From: Thalia democratica
Lineage: Eukaryota
DNA length: 64,000 nt
Reading direction: 5' to 3'
Assembly: GCA_965202585.1 (NCBI GenBank)
Contig: OZ241827.1
Coordinates: 60,450,001-60,514,000 of the forward strand
In this document: piece after piece, positions 9,001-64,000 of the stretch
Layout of the letters: each line of letters opens with the position of its first letter
How positions within the stretch are numbered: position 1 is the stretch's first letter
Translations under genes and position numbers: made by a program
The notes under the pieces: model-generated
What the model saw: the letters and a program-made list of their open reading frames with translations, nothing else
Told to the model about the DNA's origin: nothing
Databases searched by the model: none

Positions 9001-10492
9001 TTAGTTTGAGACGAATTGTAGATAAAGATTGTTATTTTTGTGTGAAAAATTATGATATTCCCATGCCAGTAAGGTTAGTTAAAATGTTTAACAAAGTTTT
9101 AAGGCTTGATAAATTAAAGTTTAATATATATAAAAAAAGCGAAAACAACTTTTTAAGGAACTGAAAGCTTATTCACTAAACATATGCTAGTCATTTTTCA
9201 CTCTACTGCAGATAAGATATTCCTTTTTGATATTTATTGATTTAATATTAGCTCTAGAACACTTGGTTTTCTTAACTGCAAACTGTAGCTGAATTAGTTT
9301 GTTGTTTATTGATTTTGTTAATTGTTAGCAATATACTAGACTTTAGAACTTATTATTTAAAAGCTTTAAACTAGCTTTAACTTTCTGTCATTCACAAGGT
9401 TTGTAAAGCTTAATCGGTTATTGATTTTACTTTTAATATAAACGCTTCTTTTTATATATCCATTGTAACGTATTTTTAAAGATTTTAATCTGAAATAGTA
9501 ATAAAATATTACATTGTTTAATACTTCCATATAAAATAGATACAGTTTCAAAAACTAGCTCAGTATTTAATACTTTACAGATGGATGTCACCTGAAACAC
9601 TGATATCTAGTTCACATTTTTCATCAAAAAGTGATGTTTGGTCATTTGGTGTGCTCATATGGGAACTTTTTACTTATTCCACCCAGTTCACACCACTACC
9701 GTACTCCCATTTAATAGACGAAGAAGTTGTTATTAACATAGTAAGGGGTCAATTACTAGCGTGTCCACAAAAATGTCCTGAATATCTTTTCTGCTTAATG
9801 CAAAAGTGCTGGACAAGGAACATACTTCAAAGGCCTACATTTAAGGTTTGTTTATAAATAAGAAATAGTTTTAAAGCACTAAAAGCAATTAACTTTACTT
9901 TTAAAACAAAATTTCCTAAAATTTTCAGGAAATTGAAACTTTTCTGTGCGGTCCAATGATTCAAAATAGTCAAGTCGACCGACAATTCAACTTGAGGTTA
10001 GATATTGTTTTCCTTTCAACTTAAAAATACGCACAGAAATGTTTCAAATAGTTAATTAATTTCGTAAATATTTAGTTGGGTCTTTTGGATTAATATTTTT
10101 TTTAATTATTTTAATCTACAGTTTGTTTGTGAAAGCATTAAATAATTTTTTACACAATTTTAATTAATAGTAGTTTTTTCTCATTTGAACACTATTGTTT
10201 TTGTTTTTAGTACATATTTTTCTAGTAAAACTTTTGTTTAGCTCTAAGTTTTAGAAATTATAGTAGTTTAAATAGATTATTCACATTAAACTAAGTTGTT
10301 ATAGGGGTTAAATTGTTTTTCAATATAACGTGAAGATATACTATAACGTATAAATAAACTGAAACACATATTCCATTTATAAATATAAATAATTAAAACA
10401 GTTATGGATTACCATCATACAGCTCCATAGATTTTCAAGAAGATCAAAACAAATTGCTACCTTCTCCGAATGGAACATTGCTGATCACTTGA
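1..10492 (+). CDS. Ror: ROR-family receptor tyrosine kinase-like gene (Ig-Fz CRD-kringle-TM-kinase), 5' partial
   Basis: Phase-consistent GT-AG exons: (..3), 694-739, 1656-1693, 2237-2354, 3998-4179, 4502-4541, 4645-4784, 5161-5366, 5564-5767, 5937-6051, 6117-6337, 6432-6560, 7591-7707, 8553-8678, 8895-9073, 9581-9845, 9929-9996, 10402-10492. The sum plus 1 nt from the upstream exon is 2286 nt = 762 codons with no internal stop. The domain order is diagnostic of ROR. Confidence 0.9.
694..739 (+). CDS. Ror: Ror N-terminal exon (GVALSKRHSKVKGGNG)
   Basis: ttacag acceptor and gttagt donor; in phase with the GTAAGT donor at base 4 and with exon 1656-1693. Confidence 0.65.
1656..1693 (+). CDS. 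Ror: Ror 38-nt exon (FQPTQQKSSSNE)
   Basis: ttcag acceptor and gtacgt donor; its phase links 694-739 to 2237. Confidence 0.65.
2237..2354 (+). CDS. Ror: Ror Ig domain, first half
   Basis: SATFKC...YQW, Ig B-strand Cys and C-strand Trp; ttctag/gttagt. Confidence 0.85.
3998..4179 (+). CDS. Ror: Ror Ig domain, second half
   Basis: WGSKLKINNVYTSDSGSYKCVATN matches the I-set DxGxYxC motif. Confidence 0.9.
4502..4541 (+). CDS. Ror: Ror 40-nt linker exon
   Basis: tttacag/gttagt; QKPPEHSEEDQPI; bridges phase 1 to phase 2. Confidence 0.75.
4645..5366 (+). CDS. Ror: Ror Frizzled-type cysteine-rich domain (exons 4645-4784, 5161-5366)
   Basis: CVEYNGNVC...CRELLMPAYCSFMFPTC...LCREDC...YC; 10 Cys including those in the next exon. 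Confidence 0.9.
5564..6051 (+). CDS. Ror: Ror CRD end and kringle (exons 5564-5767, 5937-6051)
   Basis: CYNEFDNGKSYNG...CMEW...NYCRNTDG..KPWCY...C..C; six kringle Cys. Confidence 0.9.
6117..6337 (+). CDS. Ror: Ror transmembrane and juxtamembrane exon
   Basis: Hydrophobic LCVLTICLFVVVVVMVLG followed by the basic stop-transfer RRRNRNK. Confidence 0.9.
6432..9996 (+). CDS. Ror: Ror tyrosine kinase domain (exons 6432-6560, 7591-7707, 8553-8678, 8895-9073, 9581-9845, 9929-9996)
   Basis: LGFGSYG, VQVK, HPNV, GMAYLESKGFVHKDLAARN, NFS, PVRWMSPE, SDVWSFGVLIWELFT, CW...RPTF. Confidence 0.92.
10402..10492 (+). CDS. Ror: Probable last Ror exon (SYGLPSYSSIDFQEDQNKLLPSPNGTLLIT*)
   Basis: gttaga donor at 9997, aacag acceptor at 10401, in phase and higher GC than its flanks. 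The alternative is read-through to TAA at 10022-10024. Confidence 0.55.
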
Positions 10493-13400
10493 GTAATGGA
10501 TTGATTGATATAGACTGACCGTTGGTTGTAACTGAAAGTGATTTTTATAAGAGAAGAACGATGAGATGAGAACACACTAAATTTAAAATAAAAGTGATTT
10601 TAAAAGTAATTTAAATGTTTTTTTTTTATCTATTGTCATGAAAAATTTTGATTTAAATTCTTCTGATACCTTATATGTATAAATTGATATTTGTTCTGAA
10701 TAATTTTGTTTTAGTTAAGCTGTAGTACACAACAGTCATTAATTTACCTATTTTAACTAATTGAAATGTGTAAATTTAATTTATAAGTACTTTTGGAACA
10801 AAAGCATATTTTTACAACAAATTTTTCATTTCTTTTTTCTAACTTTGAGTGTAAGTTTCTTTATTGAAAACCCATCTGTAAATAGTAATTAATCTAAAAC
10901 AAGAAGTTTGTTGTAGTTTATTAATGTTAGCTTTACAATAATTGAATTAAGATTTACTCTAAAAAAGATATATAACGGTTGTAGCAATTTATAAGAGTTT
11001 AAAAAAACATTTGAGTAGTAATTTTAAATCTTACTAAAGAAAACTATGATAATAGTTTTATCAGTTTTGCCAATTATATTTACAAGCCAAAATCCTACAC
11101 AATTTTTAAGTTTTACAATGAATATTTAATCTAAGAAGTATAATTTTATACTCAAATTATTTTTAGTTCTTTTCATAATACTTTTAGTCTTTAAAACAAA
11201 TGTTTTTAGCATTCAAGATAATTTTTTGTATTATTTTTATTTGTAGTGTTTCAACTGTTCCTCTCTTTTTGTAAAAGACTAATTAATTAAATTAAAGTCA
11301 AAGTGAAAAAAATCTCCCAATAGTAATGTTAAACATTTGCAGCATGAAATTGATAACAATATTAGTAAGAAGATATACTCACGCTATAAATGTGTGAAAA
11401 TATTACGCTTCATGTAAAACTTTTAATTTATATTTAACTCATTGCTTAAACTTGTTACTTTTTAAACCTTAAAAAATGTAAGTTGTTTGTTTATTTTAAA
11501 ATTTAACAAACTCATTAAGTTAATCTTTAACCTATGTTTTTAGAATGCTTTTAGTTATTTTAGATGTTTAAAGTTTTAGATAATACGTTATCATACTAAA
11601 GATATGTTAAATTCTTATACAATATTAAAAAACAATTATACTAGCAATTCTTAAGAAAATACATAAAGCTAAATGCACTTTCAAAATTTGTAATATAACA
11701 GTTTTATAAACAAAAACTTATTTGCACAATTTTTTTTTTCGATAAATTATTTATTTAAACATACTTACGTCTTTAGAAAGAAATTACACACCACAATGTT
11801 TATAATTTTGTAGTATTCAGCAATAAGAAGATTAATTGAGTTTGCTACGAGTTTACGTTTATTAATGTGGTTGAGAGTTGTTGTACAGTTTGTGCGCATA
11901 TCTGTTAATGAACTATATGATTTTTCTGAACGTGATAAGATGGTTTTACTTTTTTAATAAAACTAAGTCAAATATTTTTTGATAAATGCGTTTTTTAGAT
12001 TAAAAAGCTGAGGTAAAGGAAATTTAATTTAAAGTACTTAAGACGTTAATGATTGTAAGCTTTTCAAATAATTTAGACAAATAACGACTTTAAGAATTAT
12101 TATGTTATCAATAGTAAAGTATTTAGTTTTACATATTTAATAACAAAAAAATCTAATATTGAGATAATATTAATAAAATACATTTAATTATATATTTAGA
12201 AAAAGTCAATTACTTTAAAATTTTGTGTTTTCTTTTATGTGTTTAATTAATTTATGCTGAGATGAAGTTCACTCAGTTATTTGCAACGAACAAAAATTAA
12301 AAACACTACCTAAGGTATTTTAAATAACTTAAAATTGCATATCTAAAGATTATTTTTGATTCTAAAACGATAACAGTTCTAATGTAGAGATAAAAAAAAC
12401 AACAAATTTTGAGTTTTACTAATGCTTATAAATAATAATAAACAAAATATACGCACAAAACTTACTTAATTTTAACTTTTAATATGTACTTTTATCTTTA
12501 CAACTGGCTAACTTTTGTACATTTAAATATAAATAAAAAAACGACTGCAAAGACTTTGAAAAACTTTTTACACATATTAAACAAAGAAATCAATGATTAC
12601 TAAATAATTCCTTTGGTCAATCAAATGTATTTATGGTCTCAGATAAAATGAAAGTAATTTCATAATTGAGATCATTAAGTTCAAAATCGTACAAAAATTT
12701 TAATTTACCTGGAATGGCCATTAAAAACTAATTTATCATAGAAGGTTTAATTTTATGTAGGTAAATATAAATTACCTGCTAATTTTGAAGATAATTAAAA
12801 TCGATTTTTATAATAGTCATTCAAAAGGTACTGTAAATAGTAAAACAAGCTCAGTCGTATACAGCTAAAATTAATTAGTTAGTAATATTTTTTAAACATT
12901 GATAGAAATTATTAGTCAAACATAAGTAAATAAATATAAATGATTAGTTACAACAAAAACGATGTAAGATACTACAGAATCAATTATTAATTAACTATCA
13001 AACATTTTTTGATGCTACCTAAAACAGACTTATGTTAAAACCTAAAAGTCATAAAATCAAGTTTTATCACCGTGAAACTACATTTTACGGTGGATAATTA
13101 AAGAATCTACGAATGTCATAAAATTTTAATTGCAACCGTAAATTATAAGTTTTCCATAGCAGAAATTAGATTTTGTTTTAAATCTTAAACTGTTAATTAT
13201 TTTTTTACAACAGTATAAACAACTTTGCGCTAATAGTTTTTTTTTATCTACAATGGTATTTTACTGGTTAAAAATAAAACTTTAAAGATTAGTTTGAACA
13301 ATATCCTTTTTTATTTTAAAGTTTAATTTAGTTTTTTATTATAAAATTTATGCAAGTAATGCCTTGAATTGATAATTTCACTAGATTTTAAGGTTCACAA

Positions 13401-14019
13401 TTTACTTTGCTTTGTAATTTTTATATTCAATTTTATACACATGTATAAAAAACTTTTGATATTAAAATCAATGAAATATAAAAGCTTGTTTACAAAAAGA
13501 TAATTTAAAAGGCATAAAAAAATTAGAGCTTTTAAAGACTTGACATTAAAGTTTCGAAGTTTGCTAAACGTGAAGCAAAATAAAAACATTTTTATGACTA
13601 AGATCATCGTGTGACCTAAATAGAGTTTACGAAAATCAAAACGAATTTTACGTTTGATTTTACGCATCTTAAATTTCATATGACTACTCTGTTTTAGATG
13701 TTTTAATGTTTTTGGGATTTAGGGTTTAAACCTGTGGAAACAGGTAAATCAGTGTGAACATATTTGTATTTTGTGCGCAAACATTTTTTTGAGGTATAAT
13801 AGTATTTTTTGTTGACGTTTGTTTTGTCTTTTTCTATGTAAAAAAAGCTAATTATAACGTAAACTATGATATTTTACAACATTATTCACGTATTCAAAAA
13901 GCTTTACGAATAACTCAAAATAAAAGTTTAAATATTTTTTCAATTCCATTCAACACGGTCAATAAGAAAGATTATCTTATCTTAGCTGTGAAAATATGTC
14001 AGTATATTTCACAACTGAC

Positions 14020-14068
14020 AAAACATATATGTTTTGCACTACACAATTACACGTATTTGATTTTATTA
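14020..14068 (-). pseudogene. Array exon-like cassette M2, copy with a 50-nt deletion
   Basis: acaag acceptor and gtcagt donor; VIKSNTCNCVVQNI; paralog of 32931-33029. Confidence 0.4.
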
Positions 14069-14697
14069 CTTGTAATATACCTTATTACTTAATGATTTAT
14101 TTTGTTTCTACTTACTTTTTAAGTATAGTTTTTTGTAATCTTTTTTTTGAAAAAAAAAACATACTTTTAGCATATCTATTAACATTTTTTAAGCATAAAA
14201 CTGCTTAATCGATATAAGATTTGTAGTACACTAATTACATCATCGATGTTTGCAACAGATTTATAAAATTTGTAACAATTATTCTGACAAACTCTTATAT
14301 GGACGTTTAGCCTAACAAAAAGAAAGAAATAGATGTATAAACCTAGCTTTTCTACGCAATAATAGTTATTTAACCATGCATGAGTGTTTACATTGTAGAA
14401 TGGAAGTAAGTTTTGGAATAAAAAGTTAGAAAATGATAAAATTTATTTAGATATTTTAAACAAGCAGCTTTATAGTTTTTTTAATAGCAACTAACTTTAA
14501 CTTTTTTATCAAAAAATTAATTGATTTTAAAACTTTACTTAGAAAGAACGCATAAAAATTTTTAAAAAGCAATTTTTTTGTTCTACTATTATAATTTTTT
14601 TTTTGTTTGGTAGCACACAAAATTGATTCAATTTTGTTGTCAAAGTTTTAAAAGTTTCACACATTTTGAAATTTTTGAACAAAAAACAAAAACATAC

Positions 14698-14749
14698 GTG
14701 CCCATCTGTTAATAAACGTTCGTTGTACTTTAGCCTATTTATTTTACAG
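14698..14749 (-). pseudogene. Array exon-like cassette M3 (52 nt, CKINRLKYNERLLTDGH)
   Basis: ctaac branch motif + gttttttag acceptor, gtatgt donor; the same sites and length occur at 33636-33687. Confidence 0.5.
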
Positions 14750-16408
14750 CTAAAAAACGTGTTAGTCTGGGCGAAATGTAAAGTTCAATACTTTTGTTTG
14801 TAAATACGTAAGATATCATGTTTTGTGTTTATAATTTTACTTCGTTACGTTTATGATAAAATAAGTACGTAGATATTAGGTTTTTTTTATACAAGTCATA
14901 ACGATTAATTAAAATTAAAAAAATACATAAGGGTTTTAAAAAATTTGAAAACTTGTTGACAATAAAATCTTAACGTTTGTTGTTATTTATTTTATTATAT
15001 ATTGTTGTATTTGTAACTCAACTATCAGTTTATAAAAAGTTTACAGTAAAAATAAAAATGATGTTTTCATTACATATTTAATAGTTTTGAAAAAGTATTA
15101 GTTTTTTAAAGTTTTGCGTAAAATAAAAGTTTATTTCTTAAAATGGTCTTTTTAACAATGTACCACAGTACGAAACTTTATTTAAATTTAATCATTAAAA
15201 ATTTGCATAAGTTAATTAAGAGAATTATTATACATTCAAATTATGACCACGCACGAAGTTAAACATGTTTTATTTGTAAAAACTAATTAAATTTTTGCTT
15301 AGTTTTATTTAAAGCTTTAATATTTAAAAGTTCAGTGTTGAATTATGAATACAAAATTAAATATTTTGGTAGGCAGTTGCAATCTATTTTTACAAATTTT
15401 ATGATTTGGTAATCGTATCTTTAAAAAAAATCCCAATAAGTTAGACTAGCTATAAGAAAATGTTAGCTCATTGTTTTTAGTTCAAAATGAAAAAATAAAG
15501 TAAAGGTGTACTGATGATAGAAAAATATTAAGATAATTAAATTAAAATGTTTATTGATACGAAACAAAAAAACTTTAAGAATAATAAATGTTATTGAATG
15601 ACAGAAATGTAATTAAAGTTGACATTTTAAACGAGTGAAAATTACCAGGTCACAACCAAATTTATTAAAATTTCTTTTTAAAAATGCTCATTAAAATACA
15701 AAAACGTTAATTATATCATCATAAACTTAAACAAAAAATTTTCACAGTGCCGCGTTATACCATGAATTAAAAATTTTGTAAGCGAGAAATTACAAATATA
15801 TTCTCAAAAAGAAAAAATATATATGTTTTAAGTAAAAGTTAATTTTACTTAAATTCTGTTTATTGCCTAAAAATTATGAAAAAAAAACTCTCAATAGATA
15901 ATGTAAGCTGATTGTGCATGATTAAAACATTAAATTCAACATGTTTCACCCATTCAAAACTTTTCAGAGGGTTAGAAAACGTGTTTTTATCACGTTTAAT
16001 CATTAAATGACTATTTTAATTATGTCATACAAACCTTAAAAACTTTAACTACAAGACATTGAATAAAAAAAAGTAACAGTTTTTCAACTAATCGAATAAG
16101 TTAATATTTGATTTGTATACCTAAGACATTAATGCTTTATCGATTGAAGTATAGAATATAGTATATTTAGTACATAAATATTTTTACTTTGATTAGTAAG
16201 TATAATTCTAAAACTTTTTTTTTATTAAATCCGTTTTTTTTTGTAAATAACTAACTAAAAAAAGGTTTAAACTTAAACTTTTACACGACTACAAATCATG
16301 AAATTCTTGAAAACAATCTGATTTAAATGCAGCCAAAGTTTTGTTTATAAATTTAATTTTGTATTGTTATTCTGAAATAAGTTGGCAAGTTGTGTATAGT
16401 TGGTTTAC

Positions 16409-16449
16409 AAAACAAAATATAAACTTAAACTTAGTTTTGCAACTGTCAA
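16409..16449 (-). pseudogene. Array exon-like cassette M4 (41 nt, DSCKTKFKFIFCF)
   Basis: AG...GT bounded; one of five equal-length paralogs with third-position-biased variation. Confidence 0.5.
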
Positions 16450-17693
16450 CTATTTAATTAAAGCAATGTCTTATTGTGTATGCTTTAACTAAGCTATGTA
16501 AAATATGTTTGAATTTCATGATTGCATAAAAGCAATTAGATTTTTTACCTATAATAATTTTAATAACTAAATAGTAAAAATAAGTATTTTGATAAAATTT
16601 AAAATATCTTATACGTTTGTAACAAGTTTATCTATAATATAAATTTCCAAAAAATAAATGTTAGTTTTAGTTTAATACTATCGTTTAACTTTTCTTTCTG
16701 CTAAAATATTATAAAATAGTCTTAATGGATAGTTTAGGTTTTAAACTTAATACTTTAAATAAACCTAAAAAATATCAAACACACTTAAAATAAATTTGTT
16801 TATTTTTATATTGCTTTGATTTGTTTAACCGCAATGTTTAATTAAAACCATACTCTTTAATATAATACACGCTTTACTCGTACTAATAAACTAAATTATA
16901 GTAGGCTTAAACTGTAATTGTTTTTTGTAACAAATCGTACAAACTTACAAGTATTGTTCCTCTCAATTAAAATAAACAATGTTAGTTTACAATAGTACAC
17001 TTTAGAAACAGTTTTTTTTATTAAGTGACTTTCTTTTAATACATCTTAACAGAAAGGTTCCATTGTAACAAATACTATGTTATAGTTTAGTTTAAGGTAG
17101 GTTGTTAAAATACTAATGTCAGCATGTCTAACATAAATAAAGATTATTATATGAATAAAACTTTAGAAAAATTATTCTATAAACAAAGTCATAAAAAAAG
17201 TTTAAATTTTGTATAGTTTTAAAAAAAGAAAATAAAATCTTATCTTATATCTAAAATATCAGTATTGTTTAAAATTTAAACTAAATTAATAGGGAATTTA
17301 ATTAAACTTAATTTATTTGTTCAAGTTTTTTATTATTGTAGTTAGAACGTTCAGGGTTATATTTTTTGTTTTTATTTCTTAAGTATAACCGATTGTTTTG
17401 TCCAGAACAATAAAATAAATAGTCCACATCTGCTAATAAAAATTAAATTGCATTTGTAACCTTTTTATGTTTGAAGTTAAAACGTGTTGAATTAATTGTT
17501 GTACGCCCATTTGTTAAAATAAAAAACCAAAATAATTTTAAGTTTAGCTTTTTTGTTTTTAGCGTTACGTAAAACGTTTCAAATATTCTTTTTATAAAAC
17601 TAGGATTTTTAAACAAGTAAAAATATAGTTTGTAAACAAAACAATTGTTTTTTTCTTCTGAAATAAGTTGGCAAGTTTGTAAACTTAGTTTAC

Positions 17694-17734
17694 GAAGCAT
17701 GAAAAAAACATAAACTTGGTATTGCAACTGTCAA
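17694..17734 (-). pseudogene. Cassette M4 copy (DSCNTKFMFFSCF)
   Basis: aatag acceptor and gtaaac donor, 41 nt. Confidence 0.5.
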
Positions 17735-20700
17735 CTATTTAATTAAAGCTATCTCTTATTGTACATGCTTTAACTATGATATGTAAAATATGTTAGTTTT
17801 TTGTGTTTTTTTATAAAGCAAAAGAGTTAAAAGTATTAAAGTTAAAAACAGAAGTGTTATTTTTTTTATGTATTATAAAACTATAATACTCATACTTTAT
17901 ATGTATTAAAGTAAAGTTTAAAAACTCAAACAACTTTTTTAAGTTGTATATCTACCTAAACAGGTTAAAAATTTAGATAAAAGAAAAAAACAAAACACAT
18001 ATTCACAAAATAAACTAGGATTGTATAGATTTATTATTTTCTGATATATTGAATACGCACGGCTAACTAAAATTTTTAAACAATTTTACTATAAGCTAAT
18101 TCTACTTAAAGTTATTAAATTTTGATTGAATTGATTTTTTTATAAAAGAAAAAAAAACATTTATTCTATTTAAAACTATATCAAGTATTTTATTATTAAA
18201 CGATTTAGTTTCATACGGTAGGTCTCTAAACCTTCAATTTTTTTAGCTAAGTATTTGCTCTAAATAAATAATTTAGTGCTAGTAGTTATTACTAGTAAAC
18301 TTAGATAAAAAGGAGATTATAGCTAAAATAAAGATAAAATTATTCTTTAACATAGCAAAACGGAAAGAAATAATTACAAATAATGTAAATGTTTAATATT
18401 TATAAAATTCTTGGCTTTGTTACACCAACATATGCTACTATTAAGCATTATACTCACCTTTTATTACATAAAAAAATCAAAGTTTTTCATTTGTTTTGAA
18501 TTTTGTTTCATTCTAACGTGCCACTGTTATACAAATTTAAGCTGCATTAAAGCCACAACATATTTTGAGATTAGAACTCATTGTGGCAATGTTTCTAAAA
18601 AATTTGAAAAGCCGTTAAATCATTTTGCTAAGAGTTCGTCTAAAAGTCGTCTAAAAGTTAAAACTGCTTTTGCCTAAAGAAATTTTTAAGGTTTTGTTTA
18701 CTTGTGTTGTTACCAATGTTATTTTAGATGTTTACTTATTTTTAGAGCAAGTTGTAAAACTTTGTTGTTTTAAATAGTATTTACAAAGTTTACAAATCAA
18801 TTATTCGAATAAGTTTTTACCAAAAATCAAAAGTAAAATAAAAATCGAAATAAAACATTCACATCACTTGTAACACTTATGTTGTTTTTCATAGCGTACT
18901 GCCTTATTGAATTCATAAAACTTTGTAGTAATTTTAGAAGCAATAACAGCTTTTCGGTACGAATTTGATTAATTTGTGTTTTTCTATTTACTCTGCAATT
19001 AAAAAGTTTCACTTTTCCAAAAACTTCAAGTGATATCGCGCAAATGTAGCTTTAATTAATGTATCGCTTCAACAAACTATATATACATATCAATAATCTA
19101 AAACGATTAAAAATTAATAATTATTTGATATATACTTTCGAAAATAAGTTATTTTTGGTTATAACTTAGCCTATAGTACATTTTACATAAATGTTTTAAC
19201 AAATTGTGTTAAAAAATGAATTGAAATATTAAATACTATGTTTCAAAAAAACCTATGTTATTTAAAAAGAATAAAAAAAATTTGATTTTTTAAGTTAACA
19301 ATACTTTGATTAAATTTTGTTTTGGTAAAATCAAGTTTTACAGTTCAATGTTGATACTAAACATGTTTAAGATAAGCTTTTTTTAATTAAAACTGTCAAA
19401 ATTGTTTAGTTATTTTATTTATTTACAATTTTCTTTATGACAAACTTTATAAGAAAATAAATTAAAAACATAGAAAAAATTTTAATCACCTGTTCTTTTT
19501 TTGATCCATTTTAAAATAAATAATCACAGCTGTTTTGAAATTATTAATTTTTCAAAGAGTAAGAATTAAAATATTAAAATACTTTGTTAAGTAAATAAAA
19601 TGATACTAATTAAGTTTAAAAAGTTCGTATAAGTTTAAAATGTTTAAAAGAGCTACATGACTGCTAATACACTTTAATAAAAACATTTTAAAAGTGTTTT
19701 AACTGCTTTACATAAACGATGAATAAAAATTTTTTAAATAATTAGATTTAATTGTGTTTAGGACAACTGGTAACCTCTAAATATTTCAAAAAGAAAAAGT
19801 TTCAGATAAACAACTTTAGCTTAAATTGATTAACTATTGTTTAAAAAAATTTCATTAACTTTAGTATCTTTAAATAATAATGTATTTTATAAGCATTTAT
19901 CTTAGATGTTCTAGATTGTAATTACAACTTTTGAATTCTTCATATTGTTTGTTATGTAATTACAAGCATCTTGTGATTTGATTTTTTTAATTATGTTTTC
20001 TTGTTGGTATTTTCAAGGAGATGTAAAACTAAACCCACTTTGAATAGTTTTAATGTACAAAGTTTGTTGTTTACGAAAAGGGATATTTCAAACTTTTGTT
20101 AAAGTAAGCTTTTCATCTTTTACTTTCTATTTATTAACGTCAGTTACTTTGTATGAATGTAAACAGTTTAGCTTTTAAGATAGTACGTCGAAAACTGATG
20201 GAAGATGAAAGACTGTAGTTAATACATAATGTAAGCTTTACATAGTCCTTTTTTTAAATTAATACATACACTGACCAATTTTTTATTTATATTTAATTTA
20301 AAACTGTATAAAATAAAATAAAAAACATCTTTTATACAAAAATAATTTGTTTTAGAGAAGTAAATCTAGTTAACGCCCAGTATACCACATTTTATTTTTA
20401 TGACATTTATTGTTATAATTAATCTTACATGCCTAAATTTCTGTACATAGTTTAAGGCAAACACATAACAAAACATATCTTACTAGTCTTACAATTGAGT
20501 AAAACAACTTCTCAAAAAATTTAAATATAGTTATCTTTTGTACAAATAGTTGGACAAATTATATTGCTACACCAAGTAGTTAGAAAAAAACATACACATA
20601 CAAGAGTATTTCGAACAAACTTATATATTGTTAATAGTTTTACGATGATCAATAAAATCGTACAGGCCTTAAAAGGGACGTTTATAAATATTTAAAAAAT

Positions 20701-55725: not shown

Positions 55726-56670
55726 CACAACAATGCTTGCAGCTTCCAAGCTTGTTTACTTGTCAACTTAAATGTTTTTTACTTTAGGCTTGTTTAGTTT
55801 TTTTGTTTTTGTATTCAGTGTTGTTTTAGTCACTTTAATGGTAATTGTCGTATAGTTTTGTGTAGCTCTACAAAAGTTTTTCTTAAAAGTTTATGAAAAA
55901 AAAATAATTGCATTAATATTTTGGAAAAACTTTTTGAAATAAAACTCAAAAAAAGTATTAAACTGCAAATTTATTTTTTAAAACAAATGCTTCTGAATTG
56001 TTCATTTACTGGACTAAACCTATCAGAACCATCAATCTGATTTAGATAATATACACAATACTTTTTGTCGTAGATTTTCAAGTAAAGTTTTTATTTTAGA
56101 ACAAATTTTGTCTTAGTCTTTTATTTTCTAACACTTAAATTATAAAACAATTTCTGGTTTTAGAAGTTTTTATGTTTATTCTTACATAACTGTATTTAAA
56201 AGCCTATATACACTTAATTTTAGTATTTTTATAAAGTTAGAAGCTAGATAAAAAAATAGTAGTTATAAACTTATTGAGTTGAATTAGAATAAACAAGTTT
56301 AAATTATGTTGTAGAAAACAATGTCTGTTGTAAATAGTTTTTTTTTAAACAAAAAGTTTTACGTTTGTAAAATAAGTTTCAAATTTCTTAAAAATCAATC
56401 AAACAAAATAACACACTTTCTTTAGTATTTGTTTTGCTCACATTTGATAAAATTAAACACAAGCTGTTCAAAGTCATAAAAGGGTAGATGTAGCAGTATC
56501 ATTATAAGAATTTACAAACTAAAAGCAAAAGTTTTGAAAATAATCATAGATTGCTTTTGTGTTTAATATATTTAAACTTCAAAGTTCTTAGAATAAATAA
56601 TGAAAATTATTTGAGCAAAATTGCAATACAACAAAAACAGCACTTTTCAATAATTAAAAGTCAAATCGGG

Positions 56671-56789
56671 ATGGGAAATTTGTTTCTGATGTGCCGACCG
56701 CGCAGGGAAATGCGAATATCCATGATGGGCTTGGATAACGCGGGAAAAACTTCAATTCTGTACAGAATAAAAACTGGCGGCAGTTTGAG
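56671..56789 (+). CDS. Arf exon 1
   Basis: MGNLFLMCRPRREMRISMMGLDNAGKTSILYRIKTGGSL; gtgaat donor. Confidence 0.9.
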
Positions 56790-59700
56790 GTGAATGATTT
56801 CAAATACTACCTATCAGCTTAAAATAAATACAATTTCTATTAAACCTACTGTAAAACTAAAAACAATATTAGTAAAAATAAAAATTTTAAGATAGCTTAA
56901 AAAAGGTTTATACTGAGTAGTGTAACGACATGATAAAAAAACAAAAGTTTTTTTTCGCTATTAAGAATTTTTCAAAATCAAACTTTTTTTTTCTTAAAAT
57001 ATTATTAACGAAAATTACATCAAAACTTTTGATATATTTTTATTAATTGTAAAATAAAGTGTGAAAAAGAACTATTGTATTTGTGTTAAAGTTGTTCACA
57101 AGTTAAAAAACATTAATGTTTTTGTTTATTTTAAATAATGTATATCAATTTAAACTGCGAACAGAAGTGAAAAGATCAATAGTTATAGTTTCTAGTTAAG
57201 TAAACATTATTAAGAGAATATAAAGCACTACACGGCTTAATCGTTTTAAATACCTTTTAACATAAATAATGGTTTAAAGTATTAGATAGTTCAGATTAAA
57301 ACCTTTATACAGCTTATAGACAAATCGTATAAAATAAAGTTCATAATATTTGAAAAAAGTTTTTAGTATATTTTGTTACTTTTATTCAAATTTTTGTTTT
57401 TCAAAAAAAAAAGCTTTAAATAAGTTTATATATTACTTAAATAAATAAAACTGTAAAATTTTAAAGGGAAATTTCTAAGCGCTGTACTTTTTTATTCAAA
57501 GTAAGTTAAGTTGCTAGCATAAATGTTTGACCTAAACATTTTATAGATCTTGCAAATAATGTTAAAACTTGTTGCATATAAGAGAAACTACTTTCTTTCA
57601 ACATATTTTTTATATTTAACAAAAGATCTACTTTACCTGAAAGATGAAATTTGCTTTGAATTTATATCTTAATAAAATGTAGGTAAATTTTGATAAGTTT
57701 TTTCTTTCTAAGTTTGCTAAACAAACAAACTAAAGGTTTCTATTTAAACTAGTCTAATTAAAAAGTGCTGCAATAGCTTATATGACTTTCCAGTAAATTG
57801 TGTGTAAACTCAATGTAAACAAAAGTGTTAATATTTTAAACTTTAATATGCAGTTTATTATAAGTATAGTACAACTTTAAAACAAACTGTTTATCTAAAT
57901 ATTTCAATTTTGTATTTACCTAATTTTTTGTAAAAGCCTGTTGTGAACATACATAAACAATAAATCATATCTATAAACTAACAAATAGTTTCAATTTGTT
58001 AAACACCATTGTAGATTATTTTTTTTAATTGTATGTATACATTTATTTATTCAGCTGTATAACAAAATCATGAAAATATCTTCTTAGAGATTTTTTTCGT
58101 GGTTTATAGACCAAACCCTTATAACTAAACTACGTATATACTATATTATACACACATTTAATATATGTAGATGTGTTTTTTTTTTCTAAATTTTTTTAAT
58201 TGATCAATACTGTAATGCAGTGGCGTAGCGTAGTATTTTGGTCAGGAGGTGCGCAAATTTTTCTCTCAAAAAATCCTCTAAATTAAAAGTTTTGTAATTA
58301 GCTATAAAAAGATCTTTTTATAAGTAATACATTTAAAATAAACTCATTAAGTGAAATAAGTTCGAAGTAACTGTTTCTAAAAATATTACAAAATTAAACA
58401 ATTAAAAAAAGTATAAATTTCATTAGAATTACTTATACTTGAACAAATGTAAACTTACTAAATATAAATTGTTTTTACTACTCACAGTAAACTTTATATG
58501 TTTAGAAATGAATATATTCAATAAAACGAAAGTATCTGTTTTATTTACAAAAAAAATATCAATCTGTATAATATACAATACAACAGTGATAACAACACTT
58601 CATTGCACATAATTTAAATAAAGTTGCACAGAAGTAAAAATAGACCAACTTTATAACTGTTGTTACAATTTATTATAACTTTGTAAAAAAGTTAAACGTA
58701 TACTTTTAAATTTAATTCATCTGATTGCATTTGTTTAAAATAAAAATCACGATCAAAGTTTATTTCTCATAGGCCGACGCGCTTTTTCTTGTGTGTTTAC
58801 AAAAATAAAGATCAGAAAACTAGCAATAGTCTTAACACTTATTGTAGCATAAAAAGAAAACTTGTAAAATTATTTAATTTTCCTTTAAGCGTGACAAACT
58901 TTTGTAAACTTTTTGTAGAAAATCTGTCATAAGGTTATACTACTGCGGTGGACTAATTAGTTGCGTTCTTTTTTAATTTAAATTCTTATGAAGCTAATGA
59001 AATTGTAAAATTTTTCCTTATAGAGTTTTTCATCAACATCTGTGCGCACTTTCACTTGCTCACCGAATCAGTATATTTTGTAATCTCCCTAACTTGTCAC
59101 TAATGAGTATTCAAACTTCGTTTAATTTTTTGAATACAAAATAAACTTAGTTGAAAAAAGGCAAATTAAGCAGAAAAAGTTAACAATAAAGGATAAACAT
59201 ATTACATCCTTTTTTTTTTACTTTTTTTTTTTTGGGTGGCACGCATGCACCAGTGTCCCTCCCCACGTTACGCCCCTGCTGTAATGCAACTAAAACTGTA
59301 ATTAAAATTAAAAGAAACGCTTACTCCAATTCAGGCCTACTATTTCACACTAAAATCGTCTCAAGAAATATTATAAATATTAAAAAAAGTAAAGTGTTAT
59401 GTTTTAATTATTTAATTATACTACAAATATAAAACTGACTTTAATTTTAATTTTTTTCTAACTAACTTTAATACTCATATATAGTTTTATCAAATGTATA
59501 AAATATAAGATTTATGCACACATTTAGACTAACCAGGAACTTAATGACGTTTAGATTTTTGCGTATGATCAAAATAAAATAGATTTGTATTATAATTATT
59601 AGTTACTTCAATATTATTTAAAGACAAAAACATTATAACGTTTTAGCAATTTTACTCAAGTCAGGTTTACCGTTTATACATTTCACCTCATATCAATATA

Positions 59701-60518
59701 TTTCAAATATGATTTCCAACAATACCAAGTGTATTTCCAACAATATTTAAAGTTGTAAGCATAAGTATATAATTAAAGTTTAATATAACTTATAAATATT
59801 ATTTTTTCCTTTCTTAGGTCCGTTCCCCCCACGGACGGGGTCATCGTCGACCGGTTGGACGTCGGGAGAACCCGGATCGAGGTCACGGACGTCGGCGGGC
59901 AGGACAAAGTGCGCCAGCTGTGGCGGCACTACGTCCGGGCCGTCAACGTTTTGATATTCGTCATAGACTGCCACGACGCGCCGAGACTGCACGAGGCCAA
60001 AACGGCCCTTTTCAAACTGGCAGGTGATCTTTCCTTTTGTACAAAAAACTAATGTTTTTTTCATCTGCATTTTGTAACTAAATTTTTATTCTTATTCTAA
60101 ATTTAACGAAATTTGCTTTGTTAAAACTTATAAAAGGATTTAAAACAATCGAAAAAAAAATTAAACTTTTTAATCAAAGCTAATAAAGAAACTATAATTA
60201 CTAACAAAACAATTATAAAGTATTAACAACTTAAACTAATTGGCTGTAAGTTGATAAAAAAGACCAAACGGAAACCTTGTGAGCGTAAGTTGAAACTCAG
60301 CAGACGAGGAGGGCGAGTTCGCGGTGGCGGTGATGGCCAACAAGCAGGACTTGGAGGGGGCCGTGAGCGGGGAGGCGGCGGAGGAGTACCTGGAGGTCGA
60401 CGTTTTGAGGAGGGGCGGGAGGAGGGTGCGGGTGTTCGGGACGTCGGCGGTGACGGGGCGGGGCTTGAGGGAGGCGATGGGGTGGGTGGAGAAGTGCAGG
60501 AAGTGCGGGGACGGGTGA
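56671..60518 (+). CDS. Divergent Arf-family small GTPase, 180 aa (exons 56671-56789, 59818-60023, 60301-60518)
   Basis: MG myristoylation start; G1 GLDNAGKT, G2 PT, G3 DVGGQ (DKVRQLWRHY), G4 NKQD, G5 SA; 543 nt spliced in frame. Confidence 0.92.
58218..59278. mobile_element. 1061-bp hAT-type non-autonomous element in Arf intron 1
   Basis: TIR CAGTGGCGTAGCG / CGTTACGCCCCTG; perfect 8-bp TSD CTGTAATG (58210-17, 59279-86). Confidence 0.92.
59818..60023 (+). CDS. Arf exon 2
   Basis: ttcttag/gtgatc; DVGGQDKVRQLWRHY...LIFVIDC. Confidence 0.92.
60301..60518 (+). CDS. Arf exon 3
   Basis: NAGNAG acceptor (60300/60303); MANKQDL...FGTSAVTGRGLREAMGW; TGA at 60516-18. Confidence 0.9.
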
Positions 60519-61379
60519 GGGGGGTGAGAAGCAGGAAATGATGAAAACTTCTCTGGTTCGCAAGAATGTTGTTTTGTTTCATAAAACCGAACAAGTTAAA
60601 ATGTTTATTTCCTGTTTGTTGTTGTGCCAACTTGTGTTAAGTGTTTTGTTATAGCCTTTACTTGCGTTTAATCCTTATGAATTTTAAATTAACTTTTGAA
60701 ATGATTTTTAAATGGTATATCTGATAAGCGTTTTAAGTTTATAAATACAGTTTTTTTTAGTGTGAATTTTAAACTTTGATTTCCGTATTAATCATAAGTT
60801 TTATAAATTTACTGTATATTTTTAACTGGTTTAAAAATAATATTTAAGATAATACAAAACCTTAAAAAAAATTTCTTCAAACTAACTATTAATAACTTAA
60901 AAACAAAATATTTATAGCTTTGTAAAGTATTTTTAATTAAAATTCTAAATTCTATTACAAAAACTGCATTAACCTACAATATTAGTTGAAAAAATATCAT
61001 TAATTGTTTAGTATTCAACGTTTATTTCTTTTTTTTTTTTTGCTTGTGTATTATTTCTGAATAAAACATGCAATGATTTGATTTTTTATAATTGTATATA
61101 TTTTTACGTATTTATATTATAAAAAAACAACTAATTTTCAAATCGTTTACTTAGTTTCGATGCTTTATGCATCTCCTCAGAACGAAATAAATAACAAAGT
61201 AAGATTTTTAAAGAATCACACAAAAAACACATTGTGACGTTTCAACTAAAACTGAATAATTTTACTTAGTCTATTTTAAAAACAACTTATGTACAAGTTA
61301 ACTTATTTTTGCTTTGTTTGTTATTGTTTTTGGATTTATTTTGTTGTTATTTTTTTGTTATTATTTAGTGGTTTTTGTT

Positions 61380-63523
61380 CTTTTAAAATACATTTTTTGG
61401 TTATGTAGGCAGGGTTGCTGCCTTTCTTTTCTTTTATTTAATGATAAATCTTTTTTTCAATCTCGTACTTTTCCAAGCAACATAAATGGCATGTTTTATT
61501 GTTATTCGGTTTTGTTTTGGCTCTGCAGAGTATTTCCCATTTTAATTCATATTCTTTTTTTGCGTCTTTTATTTCCCAATTATAGTTCGATAGTTGGTAT
61601 TGTTTCTTTCTTATTTGTTGGTAAAGCTTGCTTTATGGTTGCTATATCTGTTATAAATGTTGTACTAGTGGAACCTACGTAAAGTTTTGTTTTATCATCT
61701 GTTTTTATATATGCTTGGTAGATTATATTTTTTGATAGGCAATTATTGTTTAACGGGCACGTTTCTTTCCTGCAGTTGCAGGTTTTTTCTTGTTGTTTGA
61801 AGTTTAGGTTGTTTAATATTTTGTTATTGTGTTTAAGAATTTTTGTTGTAAAATTTTCCATACAGCTATAAGAAATTTTTAGTGTGTTCCTGTTAAAGAT
61901 TTTGTGATATTGGTGGTTTGTGTCAAAGTGTTTATTTACCAGGTTTAAGAGTTCTTTGCCTATTTTAGTTGCTACAGTTAGGGAAAAAGGTGGGTTGAAT
62001 TGAAATAAAAAAAAATTCTTTGCTTTTTTGTTGGTTTTTCATTTGCTTTTTGGTACGTTTGGTTGAATTTGTAGTTGGCTGATTTTAGTGCTAATTGATA
62101 ACTATGTTTTATACGGTTAAATGATTTTTCGTGACTTGATAAATTGTTTAGTCTTTCGTTAATAGTTATAGGTAATTGTTTTAATATTTGATTAGGGTGG
62201 TTTGATTTGTTGTTTACGTAAAGGATGTCCGAATTTCGTTTTCTGAATGGGATGTATGTTTTGTTAGGTAACTTTAGTTCGATATCTAAAAAATCTGTTT
62301 TGATTAGGCCTGCATCGACTGTTATTTTAAATCCCCATTTGTTAAAAATTTTGTGCAAATTTTTTGTGGTATTTTCTATGGTTCTCGGCGATTTAGATGG
62401 ATGACCGCAAGGCAATCGTCTCTATATATGCCGAATTTTTCTTCATTGAATATATTTTTTTTTTTATTTCGCTTTGCATGAAAAGTCCTACCATGTCGCA
62501 CACTTCGGCTCCATTGTAGGTTCCCATGCTAACGTTAAATAGGTCAGAGGTGTTTATTTTTCCCTTATTTTGTTTTTGTGAAAGATAGTAGATTTACAGG
62601 AATGTAGTATTAAGTTTTGATCGTTGTTTGTGATTGGTGTGAATTTTTCAGCAAATTTTAGTGAATTAATTAAAGTTGTTTTTGTTATGAATGGGTAAAA
62701 TTTAGTGATATCAAATTTTATGAATCGGGTTTAAGGGGTTGTTTTTAGTTTATTGAACCAGTTTATAACGCTGTCAGTGTTTTTCCATTGATTTAGTTTT
62801 GAGCCTGTTATTGTTCTTTTATTTATTGTGTCTAGTTTAGCTTTCGTGAATTTATTAAAAGGGGATTTAGAGGGGTTCAAAACTCTACAGTTTAGTTTGT
62901 TTGAAAAATATTTTTTGTGGTCTTTGATTGTAATGAATGCAGGTTTTTGTTCTATTTTTTTAATTTTGCCTTTTACATTGTATTTGATGATGAATTTATA
63001 GGTTTCTTCATTTAGTTTTTCAATTATTCCTGGGTCTGATTTTTTGTAGTCTGATGTGATATTTTCTTTCAAAAGTTTATTGTATGTGTATTTGTCTATT
63101 TTTTAAATGTTAGTTGATTTGTTAGAAAAAATAAATAATTTTTCAGAGGATGTTATATTCTTGATATCTTTTTTCATGGTGTTTAATAAACTGTTGTTGT
63201 ATTTTTTTAAATTTAATGTTACTTATTAACTTGTACAAAGCGTTTTCAAAGTCAGCTAACCTTGCGTCCGGTGGTGGTGTGTTTCTTGTACGGAAAACAT
63301 TTCTTTGATGGTTTTTGTCTTCCTCTTGGTGCTTCTTTTCTTCGGTTTTCTGGATCTTAAAGAAACTCGCGCGCCATCTCAGTCTTTCTACGAAGTTGTA
63401 TACTTGGTTGTACATCTTGGACATATACTTTCTCTCGTTGCACAGCGGTATATTTTTCATAGAGTAGTTGAACTTTATTGGATCGAAGTTCAACGTTTTT
63501 ATTTTTTTTTTGATAATGATCAA
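61380..63523 (-). mobile_element. Decayed Penelope-like retroelement (RT + C-terminal GIY-YIG), Naiad-like
   Basis: FNYSMKNIP...RLRWRASFF; FIKFDITKFYP; MGTYNGAEVCDMVGLF; YRDDC (62412-62426); TDFLDI; CNCRKETCPLNNNC; IIYQA..LYVGST; CHLCCLEK..CLH; several frameshifts. Confidence 0.9.
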
Positions 63524-64000
63524 TTTAAGAGGCTCTACTTTGTTTTAAAGGAGCTAGTGTTTAAAAAAATGTTTTTATATTTTTACGTATATGTTAAACT
63601 GTAACTACAATTTATATCTTAAAACTATTTATATACAAATGGTTAATTAATTTAAACTTTTTTAATAGTTGTTTTCTATTTGTTTCTAATTTGTTTAATT
63701 AAGCTTAGTTAAGAAGTATTTATAATTTCTATATTTTAAAACAGACTGTCTAATTTTAAAAGAATCTATTAAAAAATAAAAAAGTTTTGCTCAAGTTTGC
63801 TATAAATGACTTATCTTTTTGTCATATTTTAAGCATATTTAGAACTATCTAAAAGCCTTTAAAACATTTCAATTCTTTATCAATTTTGTTCTTAACTACT
63901 TATTGTTAACTGTATCATATTTTGTCCTGGATAAGACCTTAAAAGATATCCGTGGTGTGCGACTCGATAACCGAAAAGTTTTTTCGTGCTCTAGGTCCTA

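Follow-up and report, generated by a model that had tools for sequence, protein, structure and literature searches.

An Arf-family GTPase gene of the pelagic tunicate Thalia democratica carries GC-rich exons within strongly AT-rich DNA, and the locus raises the question of whether such an island is imported, copied, misassembled or native to its genome. The window, meaning the whole analysed stretch of 64,000 nt (assembly GCA_965202585.1, contig OZ241827.1, positions 60,450,001 to 60,514,000), had earlier been read from its letters alone. That sequence-only reading put forward three origins for the island: very strong selection on the coding or mRNA sequence, conversion from a cDNA or GC-rich paralog, and a foreign or retrocopied coding sequence with later host introns. 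The answer favoured here, at a probability of roughly 0.8, is that this is an ordinary native Arf gene carrying a composition pattern common in this genome.

Anatomy and base composition of the Arf gene

The gene model, recomputed from the 64-kb window, comprises three exons on the + strand and a product of 180 aa. Its features are as follows (GC3, the share of codons ending in G or C).

56671..56789, + strand: exon 1, 119 nt, GC 0.45, GC3 21/39 = 0.54; start codon, N-terminal helix and P-loop (GLDNAGKT), ending in phase 2 inside codon 40
56790..59817, + strand: intron 1, 3028 nt, GC 0.231, GT..AG ends
58210-58219 and 59279-59288: direct repeat CTGTAATGCA, flanking the high-copy repeat of intron 1
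58220..59278, unstranded: high-copy repeat of ~1.06 kb inside intron 1, outside the coding signal
59818..60023, + strand: exon 2, 206 nt, GC 0.64, GC3 58/69 = 0.84 (third positions C 34, G 24); switch I, interswitch and DVGGQ; C-ending codons preferred (Val GTC 8, GTG 1)
60024..60300, + strand: intron 2, 277 nt, GC 0.235, GT..AG ends, phase 1 in codon 109
60301..60518, + strand: exon 3, 218 nt, GC 152/218 = 0.70, GC3 70/72 = 0.97 (third positions G 53, C 17); NKQD, SAV motif, C-terminus and stop codon; G-ending codons preferred (Val GTG 7, GTC 1)
60412-60440 and 60455-60487, sense strand: canonical G4 motifs in exon 3, the only ones in the window

The 500-nt flanks of the gene have GC of 0.22 and 0.23, and its two GC-rich exons are alone in the 64 kb in exceeding 0.55 GC, the 99th percentile of 100-nt windows being 0.44. 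It takes no more than ~30 nt at the splice sites, and ~50 nt past the stop codon, for the composition to shift; GC is 0.17 across the 30 nt at the 3' end of intron 1 and is down to 0.26 at most 50 nt past the stop. A GTGAAT donor stands directly 3' of exon 1, and the acceptor of intron 2 is without a pyrimidine tract. Over the coding sequence GC1 is 0.66 and GC2 is 0.44. For comparison, open frame 9540-9854 of the window, a kinase exon, has a GC3 of 0.30.

These values bear out the sequence-only reading on several counts. It had described GC3 rising exon by exon (recomputed as 0.54, 0.84 and 0.97) between AT-rich introns (introns and flanks ~0.23 GC), with sharp changes at the splice sites. 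Its hand counts of 21/39, 57/68, 70/71 and 152/218 become 21/39, 58/69, 70/72 and 152/218, split codons accounting for differences that never exceed one codon, and its 28/88 for the kinase exon agrees with the recomputed GC3. The shift that it saw from C-ending codons in exon 2 to G-ending codons in exon 3 stands at four-fold sites (G 16, C 17 vs G 27, C 6; Fisher p = 0.009).

The exon 3 G4 motifs look like a by-product of the G-ending codons; no four-run G3+ motif was seen in the ortholog L021, introduced below, by reading of its sequence rather than by motif script. A special mRNA fold, in which C-rich exon 2 would pair with G-rich exon 3, was considered and rejected, the native MFE being unremarkable against 150 synonymous-codon shuffles (whole CDS, z = -0.27; exons 2+3, z = -0.61; L021, z = +0.47). 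Over the intron 1 repeat, summed contig depth is ~10^5 vs ~10^2 alongside, with loose ends at 58218. Elsewhere in the window, the first 20 kb are part of a local family of duplicates, as found by DNA search.

Contigs from the runs of three studies together cross all exon-intron junctions. X1 contigs at 56500-57247, 59390-60028, 59999-60293 and 60264-60579 show zero differences, as does an X1 contig of 2384 nt over exon 1 and both its flanks. An X3 contig from an independent study (681 nt; 59816-60523) runs from exon 2 through intron 2 to exon 3, and exon 1 with its flanks is found on a marine metagenome contig. Independent contigs cross every junction, and the Arf gene is therefore not a chimera; the sequence-only reading had itself named mis-joined contaminant exons as what would undo it, and these contigs exclude them. 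No intron-skipping joints at the Arf splice sites occur in the DNA-type contig sets compared, which is no sign that the gene is silent. Its frame is intact, its orthologs are conserved and its introns have GT..AG ends, from which we infer that the gene is probably expressed and spliced.

Protein, orthologs and copy number

The predicted product matches the Pfam Arf profile PF00025 at E = 8e-45 (152.8 bits vs a cut-off of 22.3) over residues 10-172, corresponding to profile positions 11-171 of 174. Its nucleotide-binding motifs are intact, with GLDNAGKT at residue 20, DVGGQ at 64, NKQD at 122 and SAV at 157; the patterns required were GxxxxGK[ST] (G1), DxxGQ (G3), NKxD (G4) and SA[KLTV] (G5). 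Among relatives of solved structure, Arf3p, ARF1 and ARF6 come out best (E = 1e-33 to 1e-35), and protein-level identity to Arf6, Arf3 and Arf1 is 42-46%. Typical length, a short N-terminal helix, the P-loop, DVGGQ with its catalytic Gln, an LWRHY interswitch, NKQD and SAV are common to the Arf family and this protein. In contrast, switch I reads PPTDGVIVD here vs IPTIGFNVE in the family, the interswitch Trp of WDVGGQ has become Thr (TDVGGQ) and, in ortholog P0001, Cys (CDVGGQ), and the C-terminus bears a CRKC motif, where the family differs. By sequence, loss of the conserved Trp together with the altered switch I makes this a divergent member of the Arf family, not a non-member.

In Arf proteins proper, the N-terminal helix is amphipathic and Gly2 is myristoylated. 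The reference N-terminus here is MGNLFLM; position 56675 is A (Gly2 to Glu) in one X2 contig, in run X3 from the other organism and in X4, a marine metagenome. GARP is 0.33 in this protein vs 0.195 +/- 0.022 in 118 other Arf proteins. In a quick ML tree, P0001 is the sole partner of the gene (support 100), and their stem is 3.52 substitutions per site long; the pair joins neither the named Arf6 or Arf1 sequences nor any other subfamily and falls loosely among unnamed metagenomic Arfs, and the composition of the gene fails the homogeneity test. The protein is a fast-evolving GTPase, apparently limited to this salp lineage, with an altered effector face and a predicted role in GTP-dependent switching.

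Two contigs from Tara ocean metagenomes, L021 and L022, are the only relatives above 47% identity. Both share the AT-rich intron context and are therefore orthologs, and both have the same composition pattern. In L022, GC-rich exon 2, ~92% identical to that of Thalia, is flanked by AT-rich introns. L021, at 64% amino-acid identity, has GC3 of 0.87 and 0.95 in two parts, with AT-rich DNA ahead of the acceptor and past the stop codon. Intron 1 lies at the same place and phase at the exon 2 acceptor in L022 and L021, the contigs that reach it; intron 2 is present in L022 and missing in the more distant L021, in which exons 2 and 3 are fused. Thalia and L022 differ by 0.15 at third positions vs 0.30-0.41, plus indels, in the adjoining introns, and in comparison with those introns the silent sites of the gene appear to be under constraint.

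Within the genome, exon 2 is single copy by DNA search, and protein paralogs reach 40% identity at best. Among 5.8 billion proteins no non-ortholog above ~46-47% identity was found, the best being ordinary Arf6/Arf3/Arf1 types, and further orthologs sought in JGI metagenome contigs gave nothing closer than 46%. The readable introns of Arf paralogs in the genome lie 2-7 codons off or in other phases, intron positions being highly varied in the family. As for intron 2, derivation from a transposon-derived introner was rejected; the intron is single copy bar one 74-nt match at 79%. All told, the gene is very probably a vertically inherited, single-copy, fast-evolving and lineage-restricted gene of a pelagic tunicate.

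Recurrence of GC3-rich coding sequence in the genome

Recurrence was assessed on a genome sample of 57 distinct exons from the Arf, Ras and homeobox families, which is not an unbiased set. The class was defined by coding GC3 of at least 0.7, with introns and flanks near 0.23 GC, in unrelated native genes. Sampled exons span GC3 of 0.06 to 0.98 within flanks of 0.20-0.46 GC, mostly 0.22-0.27, and GC3 is at least 0.70 in about 21 of the 57; this Arf gene belongs to the class too. High-GC3 examples include ARF1, Ras and Rab11 (each 0.92) and an NK-type homeobox exon (0.98). The 5' to 3' rise is likewise found in Ras (0.63 to 0.92) and Rab11 (0.59 to 0.92). The sequence-only reading had named many genes with this GC3 profile as what would undo it, and the profile is indeed a recurrent one in this genome.

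The enrichment is restricted to coding sequence. Three intronless genes (L004, L023 and L025) have GC3 of 0.72-0.85, with GC of 0.12-0.28 over the 200 nt that precede the ATG and of 0.12-0.22 over the 100 nt that follow the stop. Nor is it regional: neighbouring genes L023 (GC3 0.83) and L024 (0.48), 5 kb apart, differ, and the kinase exon of the window is at 0.30. Many multi-exon genes have GC3 of 0.2-0.3 within equally AT-rich introns, and two ARF1 genes with one protein sequence have GC3 of 0.92 vs 0.32. What remains specific to the Arf gene is its GC-rich-codon amino-acid make-up, the conserved change in preferred codons (C-ending, then G-ending) and the exon 3 G-quadruplex motifs.

The genome has been described as having lost base-excision repair genes. 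Its size here is 802 Mb vs 790.7 Mb published; the latter comes with 25.3% GC, the lowest of the tunicates compared, in the available part of PMC13746493. The same part gives a CDS GC ~17 points above that of the genome and a broad GC3 distribution, and explicitly leaves the cause of the gap open (PMC13746493). The present data match that pattern of very low genome GC, far GC-richer CDS and GC3 variable among genes. PMC13746493 deals in per-gene averages; sharp drops at splice sites, starts and stops, a 5'-to-3' rise and exons at GC3 0.92-0.98 are not described in its available part.

Probable forces acting on the reading frame

Non-coding DNA (introns, sequence adjoining starts and stops, intergenic DNA) stands at ~23% GC, presumably through strong AT-biased mutation pressure, and coding positions are kept G/C-rich by a fixation bias in a large share of genes. 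The enrichment is bounded by start, stop and splice sites and is equal in intronless genes, so the force acts most likely on the translated sequence. Most likely that force is selection, and its target would be codon or coding-sequence composition; candidate targets are translation-linked mRNA stability or efficiency, and the keeping of A/U-rich processing signals out of the reading frame. A weaker bias over the first 40-50 codons recurs among the high-GC3 genes here. In the weakly constrained Arf gene, replacement sites too have been moved by the same pressure, towards codons for Gly, Ala, Arg and Pro.

Selection for G/C-ending optimal codons is known as Drosophila-type codon bias and from GC3-linked mRNA stability in vertebrates. 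The Thalia pattern is like it in its coding-only bias, mostly at third positions, in the weaker first codons and in silent sites more conserved than introns. Unlike it, the effect is extreme in size (0.97 vs 0.23 in introns), includes developmental regulators, touches replacement sites and shifts the preferred synonymous codon along the gene. Simple tRNA-matching selection would not lead one to expect that the preferred Val codon flips between exons 2 and 3 (GTC, then GTG), that developmental homeobox genes have GC3 up to 0.98 or that GC1, GC2 and amino acids shift so strongly. The shift in GC1, GC2 and GARP resembles a pressure on base composition more than one on codons.

GC-biased gene conversion (gBGC) at gene-specific recombination hotspots, with introns AT-rich for other reasons, is an unlikely source of the GC-rich exons. 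As in birds and mammals, the bias reaches into codon positions 1 and 2 and amino acids (GC1 0.66, GC2 0.44, GARP 0.33), and silent divergence below intron divergence is compatible with any fixation bias; gBGC is also kept open by the authors of PMC13746493 in the part available. Against this, intron 2, just 277 nt long and set between exons of 0.64-0.70 GC, stays at 0.235, intron 1 is at 0.17 over its final 30 nt, and GC is 0.26 within 50 nt past the stop. The GC of the intronless genes collapses to 0.12-0.24 directly outside the ORF, and genes 5 kb apart stand at 0.83 vs 0.48. We know of no conversion process that respects reading-frame ends, and the original argument that neutral gBGC ought to spill into introns was sound.

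Grasses (rice, maize) show bimodal GC3 with one gene class near 0.9, a within-gene gradient and introns less affected than exons; their GC3 drops 5' to 3', which is attributed largely to gBGC near promoters. By this comparison from general knowledge, Thalia is alike in its high-GC3 gene class near 0.9, its gradient along the gene and its less affected introns. It is unlike grasses in that GC3 climbs 5' to 3', the background is far AT-richer and the borders lie at reading-frame ends.

Selection for splicing rather than translation, by which the spliceosome would find exons within long AT-rich introns by their GC contrast, is quite improbable. Composition does switch exactly at splice sites, and the tract-less acceptor of intron 2 is followed by a purine-rich GAGGAGG run resembling a splicing enhancer; exon-intron GC contrast is reportedly, from work of Amit et al. 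in 2012, an established recognition mode in low-GC regions. However, intronless genes are equally enriched, L021 keeps its composition despite fused exons 2 and 3, the tail past the stop is AT-rich although presumably within the last exon, and many multi-exon genes remain at GC3 0.2-0.3 with introns equally AT-rich.

It is very improbable that a GC-rich coding sequence was acquired from an alga, prey or symbiont, or was retrocopied, and later gained host introns, or that its exons were converted by cDNA. Enrichment confined to the CDS and GC-type amino acids would be expected of an imported GC-rich gene, the absence of intron 2 from L021 implies that intron gain or loss happened in this gene, and its branch is very long and unplaced. 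A foreign origin nevertheless lacks a candidate donor, the best non-orthologs being ordinary Arf6/Arf3/Arf1 types at 46-47%; the signal is shared by undoubtedly native ARF1, Ras, Rab11 and homeobox genes; and composition is kept in two further species with silent sites slower than introns, unlike the neutral decay of an import. Horizontal acquisition was rejected, since in the protein and metagenome searches the gene's own kin, and no donor lineage, supplied the closest relatives. A processed retrocopy is opposed by two GT..AG introns, the first shared with orthologs and the second single copy, and by the want of a parental copy (best paralog 40%). Conversion from a GC-rich paralog finds no DNA match to exon 2 elsewhere and no such paralog, and conversion by cDNA predicts a GC-rich 3' flank, whereas the actual flank, presumably the UTR, is AT-rich. 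Both conversion and a foreign or retrocopied CDS, as first proposed, accordingly fall away; strong selection on the coding or mRNA sequence is retained as a property of many genes, not of this one alone.

Mis-joining of contaminant GC-rich pieces into AT-rich host sequence, to which the composition contrast and nothing more would point, is hardly credible given the junction-spanning X1, X3 and marine metagenome contigs and the identical junctions in the Tara contigs L021 and L022.

With the Arf gene read as native, the result at this locus is mainly a correction: an island that looks imported by composition is a native gene akin to many in its genome, so in this genome neither horizontal transfer nor contamination should be called from composition alone. 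Taken more widely, the pattern is an extreme and cleanly separable case of mutation bias and coding-specific fixation bias in opposition. Exons of up to GC3 0.98 in 0.23-GC introns, with borders at reading-frame ends and spill-over into protein composition, are of some interest to molecular evolutionists, and the genome supplies paired natural experiments such as the two ARF1 genes (same protein; GC3 0.92 and 0.32).

Tentatively, and with considerable doubt, an exceptionally strong pressure coupled to the reading frame could operate in this salp lineage, keeping a large gene class at GC3 0.85-0.98 against a mutational equilibrium of ~23% GC. The class would span developmental regulators and weakly constrained genes, this Arf among them, its amino-acid composition would be rewritten, and its polarity (weak over the first 40-50 codons, C-ending, then G-ending) would be conserved. 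Candidate mechanisms distinct from ordinary codon-usage selection may include translation-coupled decay of A/U-rich frames and selection against cryptic polyadenylation or splice signals. If such a distinct mechanism is at work, Thalia would offer a new and extreme natural model of coding-composition policing.

Coding-restricted GC enrichment of the Arf gene

The gene model was recomputed from the window sequence, with the stretch 56000-61200 read, and consists of the following features (GC3, share of G/C at third codon positions):

56671-56789, + strand: exon 1, 119 nt, GC 0.45, GC3 21/39 = 0.54
56790-59817, + strand: intron 1, 3028 nt, GC 0.231
59818-60023, + strand: exon 2, 206 nt, GC 0.64, GC3 58/69 = 0.84
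60024-60300, + strand: intron 2, 277 nt, GC 0.235
60301-60518, + strand: exon 3, 218 nt, GC 0.70, GC3 70/72 = 0.97

The coordinates and codon counts of the sequence-only reading are correct to within one codon. Both introns have GT..AG ends, and the reading frame of 180 codons is free of interruption. Third positions are mostly C in exon 2 (C 34, G 24) and mostly G in exon 3 (G 53, C 17). CpG observed/expected is 1.2-1.3 in the exons, i.e. without depletion. GC is 0.22-0.23 in the 500-nt flanks on both sides and 0.19-0.34 per kilobase over the whole window, in which only exons 2 and 3 exceed 0.55 GC in 100-nt windows. A tyrosine-kinase exon (open frame 9540-9854) 47 kb upstream has a GC3 of 0.30. 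The compositional observation is confirmed; the exotic interpretations once offered for it are not.

GC is 0.24 over the 100 nt upstream of the ATG, 0.17 over the last 30 nt of intron 1, and back to 0.26 from 50 nt past the stop codon. Three intronless genes of GC3 0.72-0.85 likewise show 0.12-0.28 GC over the 200 nt before the ATG and 0.12-0.22 over the 100 nt after the stop codon. The enrichment thus tracks the reading frame, and not exon, transcript or region. An antisense ORF spanning exon 3 (60223-60630, minus strand, 135 aa, proline- and serine-rich) is most likely not a gene but a side effect of the G-rich sense strand.

Several other elements lie in the window. Intron 1 contains a repeat of about 1.06 kb (58220-59278) between copies of the 10-nt direct repeat CTGTAATGCA, with imperfect inverted ends GTGGCGTAGCG... 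and ...CGTTACGCCCCTG. Its summed contig depth, about 10^5 versus about 10^2 alongside in 4/4 runs, marks it as a very abundant, MITE-like element. Just downstream of the gene, several A-rich ORFs of 93-145 aa (61300-63600, minus strand) coincide with strong AT and GC skew and are probably retroelement remains. Exon-sized pieces of window 1-20000, kinase exons included, recur dozens of times at 68-94% identity within about 250 kb upstream (C2:60.24-60.49 Mb); they form a gene family arranged locally in tandem. A tandem segmental duplication whose period is about 3.87 kb (41555-41875/45441-45743, 42058-42088/45925-45955, 44589-44898/48426-48737) holds ORFs with a PARP-like HGT motif (FHGTKEHSVNKILKNGF) and a TTAGGG-like G-run (GGGTAAGGGTTAGGGG).

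Assembly, orthologs and the encoded protein

Contigs of public runs from three studies were aligned to 56500-60800; all of these runs are DNA-like, and the run search returned none of RNA. Those of one sample match with zero differences over 56500-57247, 59390-60028, 59999-60293, and 60264-60579, jointly crossing all exon-intron junctions of the gene. A run labelled as another organism, from a separate study, holds exon 2, intron 2, and exon 3 in a single 681-nt contig, and exon 1 is covered by a marine metagenome. Two Tara Oceans contigs, L022 and the more distant L021, carry orthologs. Exon 2 of L022 shows 17 differences in 206 nt and meets AT-rich introns at the two junctions seen in the window gene. 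The L021 protein is 64% identical to the product; its exon 2 acceptor is that of the window gene, its two coding parts are fused for want of intron 2, and AT-rich DNA lies upstream of the acceptor and downstream of the stop codon. The absence of intron 2 (at about positions 240-260 of the 558-nt contig L021) reflects either a 3'-end loss in that lineage or a gain in the window's. An assembly artefact is ruled out, every junction being crossed by contigs from runs of three studies; mis-joined contaminant exons, named in the sequence-only reading as a possible refutation, are excluded by these contigs together with the Tara orthologs.

In the 802-Mb genome (window, C2:60450001-60514000) exon 2 and intron 2 are each single copy, the closest paralog of the product has 40% identity, and a metagenome contig scan gave no relative above 46% identity. 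A foreign, retrocopied or converted coding sequence, as had been proposed, is therefore left with no donor, parental copy or conversion partner found, and the locus is a native gene, a divergent paralog of the Arf family.

The predicted product matches Pfam Arf (E = 8e-45, residues 10-172) and can be aligned over its full length to the solved structures of Arf3p, ARF1, and ARF6 (E = 1e-33 to 1e-35). It keeps the P-loop, DVGGQ, NKQD, and SAV motifs intact, but the switch I sequence is changed and another residue replaces the Trp of WDVGGQ. Among 5.8 billion proteins searched, identity to non-orthologs reaches at most 46-47%. A quick maximum-likelihood tree built from 123 Arf sequences pairs it with one metagenomic protein only; a stem of 3.5 substitutions per site leads to the pair, which is otherwise unplaced, and the product fails the homogeneity test of composition. 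These comparisons make it a divergent Arf family member. Gly2 is required for myristoylation of Arf proteins. At codon 2 (window 56675) the reference G gives Gly2, and A gives Glu2 in three public runs (X2, one contig; X3, labelled as another organism; X4, a marine metagenome), so that most alleles may lack the lipid anchor.

L021 has a GC3 of 0.87 in its exon 2-equivalent and 0.95 in its exon 3-equivalent part. At 84 identical residues sharing the first two bases, the third position is the same G/C in 60, differs as G versus C in 11, and as strong versus weak in 9. Third-position divergence between exon 2 and L022 is 0.15 (a small sample, 68 codons), against 0.30 and 0.41, plus many indels, in adjoining intron stretches; AT-rich introns are hard to align, and the contrast is if anything understated. 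This lower divergence indicates a constraint on silent sites that is absent from introns, and the composition is being maintained rather than decaying.

Recurrence of high GC3 in the genome

Exon-sized matches from three families (Arf, Ras, homeobox) gave 57 distinct exons, about 21 of which, by our own count, have GC3 of at least 0.70. Within the Arf family an ARF1 exon reaches 0.92, an intronless Arl gene 0.88, and other exons 0.75 and 0.71; several further exons are near 0.3. The 30 Ras family exons span 0.17-0.92, with flanks of 0.20-0.29 GC, and homeobox exons 0.31-0.98. Two tandem homeobox arrays have GC3 of 0.86-0.93 (four copies measured). These arrays (C6:69.83-70.22 Mb and C4:36.18-36.71 Mb; L063-L082) hold no fewer than 11 and 15 copies, respectively, of a LIM- or POU-like homeodomain exon; the copies are near-identical and lie some 20-90 kb apart. 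GC3 also rises along genes, from 0.63 (first 50 codons) to 0.92 in Ras and from 0.59 to 0.92 in Rab11, and by at least 0.15 in 5/9 gene pairs. With so many exons and this recurrent rise, the GC3 profile, which the sequence-only reading took as special, is shared by many genes, the outcome that this reading had itself named as refuting it. Two Rab-like genes only 5 kb apart, at 0.83 versus 0.48, show that the GC3 state is set per gene, not per region.

This fits published figures. PMC13746493 gives Thalia democratica 790.7 Mb, a genomic GC of 25.3% (lowest among 38 tunicates), coding GC about 17 points higher, and a broad GC3 distribution; there, several base-excision repair genes are reported absent from salps, and the authors leave the cause of the GC pattern open (PMC13746493). 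The Arf gene is a particularly strong case of a genome-wide, coding-restricted GC bias. Its codons 41-180 have GC1 of 0.66 and GC2 of 0.44, compared with about 0.50 and 0.34-0.38 in other GC3-rich genes; the composition pressure extends to replacement sites. Gly, Ala, Arg, and Pro make up 0.33 of its product, 0.195 +/- 0.022 (maximum 0.257) of 118 other Arf proteins, and an intermediate 0.26 of the Tara ortholog.

Candidate causes

Exon definition as sole cause is argued against by the genes that lack introns and by L021 with its fused exons, which behave in the same way. Conversion from cDNA should include the UTRs, yet GC drops outside the reading frame. Neutral GC-biased gene conversion is argued against too, as it should not spare a 277-nt intron flanked by GC-rich exons; the earlier argument that it ought to spill into introns stands. 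The remaining cause would be a fixation bias acting on coding positions, most simply selection tied to translation or reading-frame integrity in an A/T-rich processing environment; within the overall explanation this part is given about an even chance (0.5).

At four-fold sites the preference flips from C to G between exons 2 and 3 (p = 0.009), and at the same place in L021, where there is no intron (p = 0.0004). Given the low silent divergence, the common flip is mostly inherited and is not independent evidence of selection; mRNA folding does not account for it. Within the window, canonical G-quadruplex motifs occur in exon 3 only, on the sense strand, as a result of the G-ending codons. An abundance of such motifs near genes is reported for salp genomes (PMC10686999), and it is suggested that runs of G-ending codons may add to these counts.

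Two ARF1 genes whose proteins are identical where compared differ in GC3: 0.92 in the intron-bearing copy (L019, C2:14783203-14783388) and 0.31-0.32 in the intronless one (L003, C8:40140794-40141282). The pair amounts to a natural experiment on what determines GC3 in this genome.
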